This document shows, one piece after another, positions 58,386 to 63,337 of a stretch of 64,000 bases of DNA (position 1 is its first letter; every line of letters begins with the position of its first letter). The stretch lies in IMG/VR virus record IMGVR_UViG_3300023184_000024, positions 62,001-126,000 of that record, one strand, 5' to 3'. The translations under genes were made by a program, and so were the position numbers. Below the pieces are notes generated by a model, which was not told the DNA's origin, did no database searches, and was given only the letters and a program-made list of their open reading frames with translations.

Positions 58386-58462
58386 GGGCCGTTAGCTCAT
58401 TAGGTTAGAGCAGTGGACTCATAATCCATTGGTGGAGTGTTCGAATCACTCACGGCCCACCA
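58386..58462 (+). tRNA. tRNA with CAT anticodon, probably Ile2 (lysidine type)
   Basis: GGGCCGT/ACGGCCC acceptor, CUCAUAA loop, encoded CCA; D/anticodon arms resemble E. coli ileX. Confidence 0.85.
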
Positions 58463-59519: not shown

Positions 59520-61274
59520 ATGACACACTCGATTGCACTAGTACAAGCCAATGATATAATAGGTAACAATGTTAGGTTACCATTGGCCATCGGTGTACTT
59601 TGGCAGCAGGCAATGACTAGTACACTTAATTCTAACAAGTGGGAATTAGAAAAAATAGTTCACGCTAAATTACCCGTAAACGAAACAGCACAACAATTGT
59701 CGCACTGCGATGTTGTTGCATTTAGTTGCTATGTGTGGAACTTTGAATACCACATGCAACTGGCACAAGCTATTAAAAAAATAAACCCAACTTGCTTTGT
59801 AGTAGTTGGTGGTCCTCAAATACACACAGGGTTTGTGGACTTTTGGCCAGCATGGGGACACTGCATAGACTTTGCATTACTGGGCGAAGGTGACAACAGT
59901 TTTTGCCAATTGTTGGAACAGTGGCCCGCCCAACAAAGCAGTGCCATTCCGGGTGCCTGGACCAAAGACTGGTGTCAAGGCGAAGCACCAAGAACTGAAA
60001 ACCTAACTACATTACCCAGTCCGTACTTGAACGGATTCTACGATTCAATCATCCAAGAAGAAACAGCCAAGGGCCATTATATTGAAGCTGTGCTCCAGAC
60101 CAATCGAGGATGCCCATACCATTGTACTTTTTGTGAAGAAGGCAAAGAGTACAAAAATAAAATGTTCTTCTACGACGAAAAACAAATACGCCAAGAAATA
60201 GAATGGTTTGGTATCAACAAAATTGAAATGGTGGACATTGCCGATGACAATTGGGGAATTGCTGACAGAGATGTTGACCTCATGCAGTATATCTGTGAAA
60301 CAAAACTCAAATACGGATACCCCAACGTGCTCGATGCCACGTATGCCAAGAATGCTCCTGATCGATTATGGGCAATTGCCAAGATAGATCATCGATTCGG
60401 AACCAAGTTGATCAGAGGTATAACATTTGCATATCAAAGCAACAACACAGAAACACTGTCTGCAATTAAAAGATTCAATCTTGTGCCAGACAAGCAGTAC
60501 CAACTGATCAAAAAGCTAAAAAGTATCGGAACTCCTACCTACGTAGAAATGATCTGGCCACTGCCGTATGAAACATATCAAACATTTTGTCAGGGCATTG
60601 ACGACACAATCGACCTAGGACTTGATACTTGGTTACAAGTGTACACCTTGGGTATGAGTCCTTCCACTGATTTATATGATGATTTCGTCAACAGCTACGA
60701 CTTGGCTGCTAGTAAAAGTAATCAAAGTTTTATACCTGCGTTTGCAACCCCTGTCAGTAATAAGTGGGTGACCAACGAAACAATGATACAAGGGCAGGTA
60801 TTTTATACGTGGCTAGCGGTGCTGTATTATTTTGGGTTTGCAAGGCCTGTACTTGAATGGTTTAAATTATCAAAGGGACAAACAATCACTCAAACTGTTG
60901 ATAAATTCATTGAGTTTGCCGGCTCAGACACAACGTTGTGTGCATACAAAGAAAAAATCAACAACTACTGGCAACAAAGTATTTTAAAACAACCATTGCC
61001 TGACATTGGTATGTTTAAAAATTCCACAGACTTTTGGCAACCATACACGCATCTGGCCAGCTGGTTACAACACGATCATGACAATTTTATAGTCAGCGTC
61101 GGCGAATTTTTAGAATCACAACAGTTAGATACATCGGACATATCAAGGTTGACAGAGAAACTCAAACACTGTATAGTTAAGTTTTCCCACAGTGATGCTG
61201 ACAAGTTTTTTAATTTTTGCCAGCAATACTATTTCTACAAACGAAAATCTGGTGCATCTTATGTGTCGCCATAA
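59520..61274 (+). CDS. Cobalamin-binding radical SAM protein
   Basis: N-terminal LPLAIGVL, AFSCYVWN and VVGGPQ (B12-binding domain); TNRGCPYHCTFC. Confidence 0.88.
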   Translation: MTHSIALVQANDIIGNNVRLPLAIGVLWQQAMTSTLNSNKWELEKIVHAKLPVNETAQQLSHCDVVAFSCYVWNFEYHMQLAQAIKKINPTCFVVVGGPQIHTGFVDFWPAWGHCIDFALLGEGDNSFCQLLEQWPAQQSSAIPGAWTKDWCQGEAPRTENLTTLPSPYLNGFYDSIIQEETAKGHYIEAVLQTNRGCPYHCTFCEEGKEYKNKMFFYDEKQIRQEIEWFGINKIEMVDIADDNWGIADRDVDLMQYICETKLKYGYPNVLDATYAKNAPDRLWAIAKIDHRFGTKLIRGITFAYQSNNTETLSAIKRFNLVPDKQYQLIKKLKSIGTPTYVEMIWPLPYETYQTFCQGIDDTIDLGLDTWLQVYTLGMSPSTDLYDDFVNSYDLAASKSNQSFIPAFATPVSNKWVTNETMIQGQVFYTWLAVLYYFGFARPVLEWFKLSKGQTITQTVDKFIEFAGSDTTLCAYKEKINNYWQQSILKQPLPDIGMFKNSTDFWQPYTHLASWLQHDHDNFIVSVGEFLESQQLDTSDISRLTEKLKHCIVKFSHSDADKFFNFCQQYYFYKRKSGASYVSP

Positions 61275-62210: not shown

Positions 62211-62271
62211 AAACACATTGGTGTTGGTTTAACAAATAAGTAAACCTAGTTATAGTGTGTTTCTATATGGT
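62202..62271 (+). other. Long hairpin in tRNA-cluster spacer
   Basis: ACCATATA/TATATGGT plus AAACACAT/GTGTGTTT and inner GGTTTA/TAAACC. Confidence 0.6.
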
Positions 62272-62277
62272 AGAGTT

Positions 62278-62367
62278 GGAACGGTCCCATAATGGTATTG
62301 GAGCGGATTGCTAATCCGTCGAGTGGTGAAAGCCGCTTTCTGGGTTCAAGTCCCAGTCGTTCCGCCA
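62278..62367 (+). tRNA. tRNA-Ser(GCT)
   Basis: TTGCTAA loop, long variable arm, G73, CCA. Confidence 0.93.
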
Positions 62368-62374
62368 ACATTTT

Positions 62375-62450
<76 letters not shown>

Positions 62451-62457
62451 AACATAT

Positions 62458-62533
<76 letters not shown>

Positions 62534-62541
62534 ATTTCTTA

Positions 62542-62633
62542 ACCTCGGTAGTTTAACGGTAAAACAGCGGATTTATATCCCGTGCGCAACAGATAATTGG
62601 CCAATGTGGGTTCAACTCCCGCCCGAGGTACCA
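62542..62633 (+). tRNA. tRNA with TAT anticodon (nominal Ile-AUA) and a 22-nt variable arm
   Basis: ACCTCGG/CCGAGGT acceptor, TTTATAT loop (anticodon 62574-62576), 7/5 fold, A73, CCA. Confidence 0.75.
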
Positions 62634-62641
62634 TCAAGTTT

Positions 62642-62715
62642 GTATCCATAGTGTAATGGCAGCATCGCGGTCTCCAAAACCGTCAGTCTAGGTTCGAGTC
62701 CTAGTGGGTACGCCA
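62642..62715 (+). tRNA. tRNA-Trp(CCA)
   Basis: GCGGT-CTCCAAA-ACCGT; G73, CCA. Confidence 0.94.
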
Positions 62716-62731
62716 AATAAAGGAGCATAGT

Positions 62732-63337
62732 ATGCCAGCAGTATTTTTAGTCAGTGATACACACTTCGGACACGCTGGTGTGTGTCGCTTCATGCACCCC
62801 GATGATCCTGAAGTAAAATTACGGCCGTGGACTGATCCCGATGAGATGGATGAGGAAATGGTGCGACGATGGAACGACCGTGTGCGACCCAACGACAAGG
62901 TCTACCATTTGGGCGATGTTGTCATCAACCGTAAGGCCATGAAAACCTTGCATCGCTTGAATGGTGACAAGGTGTTGATACGCGGCAACCATGACATCTT
63001 CCGTGACGAGGAGTACAGAGAACACTTTCGTGAGTTGCGAGCATACCATGTCATGAACGGAATGATCTTGAGTCATATTCCTGTGCACGAAGCCAGCTTG
63101 GGCAGGTTTGGTACAAACATTCACGGACACTTGCACGCCAGTCGTGTAAAGAAAGTGCGTGGCTACGATGTCGAAACAGGTACCATGTTGTACAGCAACG
63201 AGATTGATCCACGCTACCATTGTGTCTGCGTAGAACAAACCGACTACACGCCCATCTTGTTTGAAGATGTGATCAAACGCATTGAAGCAGAAGGCGGTAG
63301 TGTGGGATTTAAAAACGGCAACGGACCAACTATGTAA
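62732..63337 (+). CDS. Calcineurin-like metallophosphoesterase
   Basis: SDTHFGH, HLGDV, RGNHD, LSHIP, HGHLH. Confidence 0.92.
   Translation: MPAVFLVSDTHFGHAGVCRFMHPDDPEVKLRPWTDPDEMDEEMVRRWNDRVRPNDKVYHLGDVVINRKAMKTLHRLNGDKVLIRGNHDIFRDEEYREHFRELRAYHVMNGMILSHIPVHEASLGRFGTNIHGHLHASRVKKVRGYDVETGTMLYSNEIDPRYHCVCVEQTDYTPILFEDVIKRIEAEGGSVGFKNGNGPTM

Follow-up and report, generated by a model that had tools for sequence, protein, structure and literature searches.

Bacteria usually read the isoleucine codon AUA with tRNA-Ile2, a tRNA with anticodon CAU and discriminator A73 that is modified to lysidine by TilS and coexists with tRNA-Ile(GAU). In Mycoplasma mobile and some Firmicutes, AUA is instead read without TilS by a class I tRNA-Ile with an unmodified-type UAU anticodon, and these organisms rely on an isoleucyl-tRNA synthetase (IleRS) with Arg or Lys at the wobble-reading site (PMC3575796). 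Long variable arms (V-arms) are otherwise found in class II tRNAs (Leu, Ser, Tyr, Sec), in which a hairpin is inserted between positions 45 and 46 and total length is 90-95 nt. The UAU anticodon and a long V-arm occur together in nematode nev-tRNA-Ile(UAU), a Leu-type class II body charged with Leu by LeuRS in vitro (PMC4300185, PMC3333845), and in bacterial allo-tRNA(UAU), which has 8/4 or 9/3 acceptor/T stems. Hairpins that present the cognate anticodon nucleotides to a synthetase from a non-standard position include one in yeast HisRS mRNA (PMC6542539). The E. coli thrS operator and viral tRNA-like structures such as BMV TLS-Tyr are further examples.

Here, we describe a phage tRNA with anticodon UAU that combines a class I core with an extra hairpin, whose loop resembles the anticodon loop of tRNA-Ile(GAU), and we assess whether this hairpin may let the host synthetase accept the tRNA. 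The window analyzed is a 64,000-nt stretch, bases 62001-126000 of a complete 352,754-bp IMG/VR phage record with direct terminal repeats, which comes from lake or freshwater samples. The genome encodes 29 tRNAs and a tmRNA; the latter was called by ARAGORN as a permuted gene with the tag peptide ANDEQFALAA at G000:C1:136733-137133, outside the window (G000:C1 denotes sequence of this phage record).

A conserved family of tRNAs with anticodon UAU

ARAGORN calls a 92-nt tRNA(tat) at window 62542-62633 (+). The Rfam tRNA model (RF00005) scores 54.1 bits (gathering score 29, E 7e-10), with a 19-nt insert in the variable region and a single non-pair at 31:39. An initial annotation based on the sequence alone had described a 7/5 cloverleaf with anticodon UAU, an A31:C39 mismatch, a 22-nt variable arm, A73, and CCA, and this observation is confirmed in every detail. 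The features, in window coordinates, are as follows.

62278..62715 (+), tight tRNA block Ser(GCU)-Thr(UGU)-Asn(GUU)-Ile(UAU)-Trp(CCA) with 7-8-nt spacers; the UAU tRNA lies inside it
62542..62633 (+), whole tRNA gene, 92 nt, anticodon UAU, CCA encoded
62542..62548 (+), acceptor stem 5' strand (7 bp), pairing with 62623-62629
62551..62565 (+), D arm, 4-bp stem GUUU/AAAC, loop AACGGUA
62567..62583 (+), decoding anticodon arm, stem GCGGA/CCCGU with G27·U43 and A31·C39, loop UUUAUAU, anticodon UAU at 62574-62576
62584..62605 (+), 22-nt variable region: 2-nt linker, hairpin, then the 4-nt tail CAAU, which behaves like class I positions 45-48
62586..62601 (+), V-arm hairpin GCAA-CAGAUAA-UUgGC, 4 bp, with a bulged G at 62599
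62590..62596 (+), 7-nt V-arm loop CAGAUAA, a mimic of the tRNA-Ile(GAU) anticodon loop CUGAUAA, with GAU at 62592-62594
62606..62622 (+), T arm GUGGG-UUCAACU-CCCGC, 5-bp stem
62630..62633 (+), discriminator A73 (62630) and encoded CCA (62631-62633)
58386..58462 (+), tRNA(CAU), probably the lysidine-dependent Ile2 type, a second AUA decoder in the same phage

A promoter-like site lies at 62229-62256, but such sites are no more frequent here than in shuffled sequence. The tRNA block is followed directly by a 201-aa calcineurin-like metallophosphoesterase (62732-63337, +), relatives of which occur in at least 593 viral contig stretches. A 584-aa ORF at 59520-61274 (+) has weak matches, slightly below threshold, to the B12-binding and radical-SAM families. 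The initial annotation had also proposed that the tRNA(CAU) is of the Ile2 type, which is partly supported: it has C4-G69 and C5-G68, which are TilS determinants in E. coli, and its E. coli matches are mostly annotated tRNA-Ile, although two are annotated tRNA-Lys.

To determine whether the tRNA is conserved, we first used the metallophosphoesterase gene to collect 80 related phage loci. In those loci, every tRNA(TAT), at L032, L033, L043, and L076 (L numbers designate loci retrieved for comparison), is 92-93 nt long. GenBank Vibrio phages carry an annotated 93-nt tRNA-Ile of the same build; these are henriette 12B8 and the Luma/Achelous/Brizo group, which infects V. harveyi and V. campbellii. 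An Acinetobacter phage has one as well. A megablast search of the tRNA cluster against GenBank phages, in contrast, found only the neighboring tRNA-Asn, in phiKZ-like phages. An IMG/VR scan for the V-arm motif, with the anticodon left free, hit more than 119 contigs, and all 121 of their tRNAs (90 unique) have anticodon TAT. A scan that fixed only the anticodon arm and left the V-arm free brought in further, more divergent members. Finally, a scan of one genome per bacterial species found 51 carriers, including Xanthomonas, Stenotrophomonas, Pseudoxanthomonas, Microbulbifer, and Marinobacter. In all, we collected 165 unique homologs (119 viral, 46 bacterial), all with anticodon UAU. Part of this set was retrieved with patterns that fix the V-arm loop (the IMG/VR motif scan and the bacterial scan), but the subsets retrieved without that constraint, i.e., the related phage loci and the anticodon-arm scan, agree with the rest.

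In the bacterial genomes, the gene sits either in tRNA arrays or as a solitary copy. The X. translucens copy lies in an island with a phage-type integrase, while the Microbulbifer copy (L247:2510-2601) lies among ordinary chromosomal genes. The latter is about 0.9 kb from a DTW-domain gene (L247:3519-4112, +), of the family of tRNA acp3U transferases that modify the variable loop, although this proximity may be chance.

The cloverleaf is supported by covariation. Folding of the single sequence was uninformative (MFE z-score of -0.34, and RNAfold preferred a shifted 4-nt anticodon loop), but covariation is decisive: over 55 non-redundant homologs, 95.9% of cells pair, against 38-53% when partners are slid, and 18 of 25 pairs change on both sides. 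These include all seven acceptor pairs, with 100% of cells paired, and four of five T-stem pairs; the layout is 7/5 in all homologs. The first acceptor pair, 1:72 (alignment columns 2:96), is G·U in 29 of the 55 representatives and A-U in 11, so U72 is favored; the window tRNA has A1-U72. A73 is present in 162 of 165 sequences. Of the minor E. coli IleRS determinants U12-A23, C29-G41, and C4-G69, U12-A23 is kept in 162 of 165 sequences while 11:24 and 13:22 covary, position 29:41 is G-C rather than C-G, and position 4:69 is variable.

The decoding arm is equally constrained. U33, U34, A35, U36, and A37 are invariant in 165 sequences, and G27·U43 is invariant among the 55 aligned members. The A31·C39 "mismatch" is a conserved trait and not damage: 31:39 is A·C in 105, G-C in 30, and G·U in 23 of 165 sequences.

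The variable-arm hairpin and its loop

The tRNA has a class I core. The D stem has 4 bp, the Levitt pair covaries (A15:U48 in 141 sequences and G15:C48 in 21), and the nucleotide at position 46 follows 13:22, such that U-A goes with A46 and C-G or U·G goes with G46. Thus, this is a class I tRNA with a hairpin inserted at the site where class II arms sit. The hairpin is a real helix: its two inner pairs switch between A-U/A-U and G-C/C-G in 20 and 18 of 55 sequences and are never unpaired. Where the V-arm was left free in the search, the stem covaries (AA/UU, GC/GC, GA/UC, AC/GU) while the loop stays C-A/U-G-A-U-A/U-A. Across the family, the stem is 4-5 bp.

In one alignment of all 165 sequences, the 7-nt loop reads C(162) A(160) G(165) A(165) U(164) A(154) A(163), and the bulged G in the 3' strand is present in 164. 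This is the anticodon loop of tRNA-Ile(GAU), CUGAUAA, with one change, and several members have exactly CUGAUAA. The initial annotation missed this main point, that the loop of the arm carries GAU. The copy is not perfect, since most members have A rather than U at the second loop position, 11 have U at the equivalent of position 37, and the bulged G has no counterpart in tRNA-Ile. The one member without GAU (L229:10125-10214, -) has the loop UGGACUG, with the Val anticodon GAC, while its decoding anticodon is still UAU; no CCA is encoded. It amounts to a natural test case for the identity model discussed below.

Other long tRNAs in these arrays have different arms. Over-long class I-isotype tRNAs (Lys, Glu, Thr, Gly, Cys) have short arms capped by GAAA-type loops; loci L268, L279, L228, L233, L182, and L185 hold Lys, Glu, Asn, Thr, Gly, Cys, and Ile(GAU) tRNAs of 83-90 nt with such short GAAA-capped extra arms. 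L032 and L033 have a 99-nt tRNA-Pro(UGG) call with a long insert, next to a normal tRNA-Pro. The Ser, Leu, and Tyr arms of the phage itself have small loops of 3-5 nt as drawn. Conversely, tRNA-Leu genes (UAG, UAA, CAA, CAG) of only 74-78 nt, which lack the long V-arm that bacterial tRNA-Leu normally has, are common in these phage and island tRNA arrays (G000:C1:132055-132131, outside the window, and 86 genes in the retrieved loci).

We considered several origins and roles for the hairpin. An intron or artifact is unlikely because the arm is conserved with compensatory changes. In four lake metatranscriptomes, RNA-library contigs cover relatives of the tRNA, hairpin included; no joint or deletion over 62584-62605 was found, and one relative's contig spans it, though such contigs show presence only, not transcription or RNA ends, and cannot exclude DNA carry-over. 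Descent from the neighboring tRNA-Ser(GCU) was suggested by nearly identical anticodon stems, but with the hairpin removed, the body is about 60% identical to many isotypes and has no consistent nearest paralog in 97 comparisons, so this idea was dropped. Pairing of the V-loop with the tRNA's own anticodon (AUAA with UUAU) has no support, as the 11 members with U at the critical position have an unchanged anticodon.

It is also unlikely that the hairpin is a neutral relic of a tandem duplication of the anticodon arm, or that the molecule has a non-translational role such as titrating IleRS. The length arithmetic fits a duplication (76 + 17 = 93 nt), and in a Trp family described below, the two arms are visibly similar in sequence; in the Ile family, however, they are not alike, so duplication remains only a possible origin there. 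The invariant loop, together with hairpin, acceptor, and T stems that are saturated with compensatory changes, indicates selection rather than recency, and the encoded CCA, A73, canonical T and D loops, and position inside tRNA operons all point to a working tRNA.

Another possibility, which we consider very unlikely, is a two-headed decoder in which either arm can serve on the ribosome, so that one tRNA reads AUA through UAU and AUU/AUC through GAU. The hairpin does have anticodon-arm dimensions, a few members have a canonical CUGAUAA loop with U33, and the Trp-family hairpins are perfect 5-bp, U33 anticodon arms. However, 160 of 165 Ile-family sequences have A in place of the near-universal U33, the stem carries a bulge, these phages also encode a normal tRNA-Ile(GAU), and no precedent is known.

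AUA decoding, synthetase identity, and a parallel Trp-type family

The initial annotation had inferred either a TilS-independent AUA decoder resistant to host nucleases or a tRNA that inserts Leu or Ser at AUA by mistranslation or codon reassignment; this interpretation is only partly supported. Its reading as an extra AUA decoder that does not need lysidine is supported in outline: the tRNA has U34, the phage encodes no TilS-type enzyme, and the gene coexists with a CAU Ile2-like tRNA. We found nothing that speaks for nuclease resistance.

Insertion of Leu or Ser is not supported. AUA accounts for 1,628 codons in a crude gene set, which is 15.1 per 1000 codons and 24% of Ile codons. We aligned AUA sites with relatives, a check that the initial annotation had suggested, and found Ile codons 51% of the time, Val 19%, Leu 10%, Met 4%, and Ser under 2%. 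This is the same profile as at AUU and AUC sites, whereas UUA and CUA sites show 68% Leu. This is indirect evidence that AUA means Ile, and we see no sign of reassignment, although the comparison cannot exclude low-level mistranslation. That the long arm makes the tRNA a substrate for LeuRS, SerRS, or TyrRS, so that AUA is partly or wholly read as Leu, Ser, or Tyr, is therefore very unlikely. The nematode and allo-tRNA precedents and A73, which fits LeuRS and TyrRS, are compatible with it, but the core is class I, the V-loop has 7 nt and a fixed sequence, G73 is absent, and most members have C2-G71, reported as an anti-determinant for E. coli SerRS.

Why would a U34 tRNA carry a GAU hairpin? 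The anticodon and A73 are the strong determinants for IleRS (PMC9976931); in the window tRNA, the decoding arm has U34 rather than G34 or lysidine-34, and GAU occurs only in the V-arm loop. E. coli IleRS charges a UAU tRNA poorly, a single W905R change raises UAU specificity 20-fold, and Trp at that site is typical of bacteria that have tilS (PMC3575796). The same paper notes bacteria that carry both tilS and a tRNA-Ile(TAT) gene yet have the Trp form, which left their charging unexplained. It notes Ferrimonas balearica and Cyanothece PCC 7424 as puzzling. We checked five bacterial carriers of the long tRNA (Microbulbifer, Marinobacter, X. translucens, a Nitrospirales MAG, and a Rhodospirillales MAG), the host of this phage being unknown. 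All five have a bona fide TilS, which rules out TilS loss in these carriers, and all five have the C-x-R-C-W (Trp) motif in IleRS. The phage itself encodes no class Ia synthetase.

A second family offers an independent parallel. Locus L203 also holds a 96-nt tRNA with anticodon UCA (L203:5558-5653), which ARAGORN labels SeC. Its body is Trp-like with G73, and its V-arm is a 5-bp stem with the loop GUCCAAA. A scan that fixed only the UCA anticodon arm, leaving the V-arm free, returned 58 unique long tRNAs. Of the 42 that are not Sec-like, 41 carry UCCA in the V-arm loop, and in 32 of those it is a clean 7-nt NUCCANN loop, mostly CUCCAAA or GUCCAAA, on 29 different stems; only 1 of 16 genuine tRNA-Sec genes is flagged. 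These Trp-type genes (UGA readers), at L203 and about 40 further loci among L314-L426, are 93-100 nt long. The anticodon is a major TrpRS determinant. In both families, the decoding arm differs from the mimic only at position 34, where it has U so as to read an A-ending codon. The families differ in amino acid system, the Trp-type hairpin is a perfect 5-bp arm with U33, and the Trp-type family is absent from this window's phage. This parallel is the strongest argument that the hairpin is an identity element and not some other structural feature.

Altogether, we suggest that this is a functional elongator tRNA that decodes AUA as isoleucine without lysidine, and that its two arms divide the work. 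In this view, the UAU arm, with canonical U33 and A37, would pair with AUA on the ribosome, while the GAU hairpin would offer host IleRS the anticodon nucleotides it needs, either by taking the place of the anticodon arm during charging or through a kink at the conserved bulged G. This would give phages and mobile islands a portable AUA decoder that is independent of TilS and works with an unadapted host IleRS, which the phage would need given its AUA usage. We give this reading a probability of roughly 0.5. The sequence comparisons establish that the gene is real, conserved, and structured, that the hairpin and its loop are under strong constraint, and that AUA sites behave as Ile; that IleRS reads or even touches the hairpin, and that the tRNA is charged with Ile, is inference from sequence alone. 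Class I synthetases approach the tRNA with the variable region facing solvent, so a V-arm in the usual class II position should not reach the anticodon-binding domain, and the model needs an arm swap or an unusual geometry. Furthermore, some Firmicute-type IleRS enzymes accept UAU without any such arm, and 13 class I tRNA(UAU) genes exist in phages, so the arm is not universally needed.

Alternatively, but less likely, this may be an ordinary AUA-reading tRNA-Ile that IleRS charges through its own UAU arm, perhaps after U34 is modified. The hairpin would then serve another partner, such as a modification enzyme (e.g., the t6A machinery, which reads U36-A37-A38-type loops), a phage or host protein, or a tertiary contact that tunes decoding so that UAU does not misread AUG. 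The conservation of the bulged G and the anticodon stem suggests specific contacts beyond a simple mimic, the 31:39 pair is held as a wobble-type pair, and UAU tRNAs misread AUG on E. coli ribosomes, so accuracy tuning would be useful. However, this does not explain why the loop should be exactly the Ile anticodon triplet or why Trp-type UCA tRNAs carry exactly the Trp anticodon loop, and carriers have the IleRS form reported to read U34 poorly.

More broadly, and more tentatively, phages and mobile islands may use a general trick, in which the anticodon arm of a tRNA is duplicated, the wobble base is changed in the copy that the ribosome uses, and the original is kept as a V-arm hairpin that the synthetase reads. 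This would separate which amino acid is attached from which codon is read, giving TilS-independent AUA reading in the Ile family (UAU plus a GAU hairpin) and UGA-to-Trp reading with unmodified host enzymes in the Trp family (UCA plus a CCA hairpin). Synthetases that read the anticodon tie codon meaning to tRNA identity, which is a main barrier to changing the genetic code, so a natural tRNA that carries its identity signal on a separate arm would be a new principle of tRNA recognition. It would explain how phages bring AUA and UGA decoders into hosts whose IleRS and TrpRS reject U34, and it would give synthetic biologists a ready scaffold for reassigning codons without engineering the enzyme. 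The idea is directly testable because the tRNA occurs in cultured Vibrio phages and in Xanthomonas, Microbulbifer, and Marinobacter strains. Annotation pipelines currently label these genes plain tRNA-Ile, or tRNA-Sec for the Trp family.

Comparison with described tRNAs and anticodon mimics

Dedicated AUA decoders, UAU tRNAs with long arms, and anticodon-mimic RNAs are already described; what is new here is the anticodon-loop mimic in the V-arm and its parallel in a Trp family. Our literature search, which was not exhaustive and so cannot exclude prior description, covered nev-tRNA-Ile(UAU), allo-tRNAs, the M. mobile system, anticodon-mimic RNAs, and a 2025 preprint that screens phage suppressor tRNAs, and it found no description of a tRNA whose variable arm copies an anticodon arm.

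Like tRNA-Ile2, the window tRNA has A73, coexists with tRNA-Ile(GAU), and would be a dedicated AUA decoder, and a probable Ile2 copy is encoded in the same phage; it differs in having U at position 34, in needing no TilS step on our reading, and in carrying an extra 16-nt hairpin, while the carriers tested keep TilS as well. It shares the UAU anticodon with the class I tRNA-Ile(UAU) of M. mobile and some Firmicutes, but the carriers tested have the Trp form of IleRS rather than Arg or Lys, and the tRNA brings a GAU hairpin instead. It shares the position of the inserted hairpin and the total length with class II tRNAs but has a class I core (4-bp D stem, 13:22:46 triple), a 7-nt loop of fixed sequence against 3-5 variable nt, and an anticodon that is not Leu, Ser, or Tyr. 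In contrast to the Leu-type bodies of nev-tRNAs and the 8/4 or 9/3 stems of allo-tRNAs, it is 7/5 with a class I core and an Ile-anticodon loop in the arm. Finally, the thrS operator, HisRS mRNA, and BMV TLS-Tyr also present cognate anticodon nucleotides to a synthetase in a stem-loop, but those are regulatory or genomic RNAs, whereas here the mimic would sit inside a working tRNA and serve its own aminoacylation.
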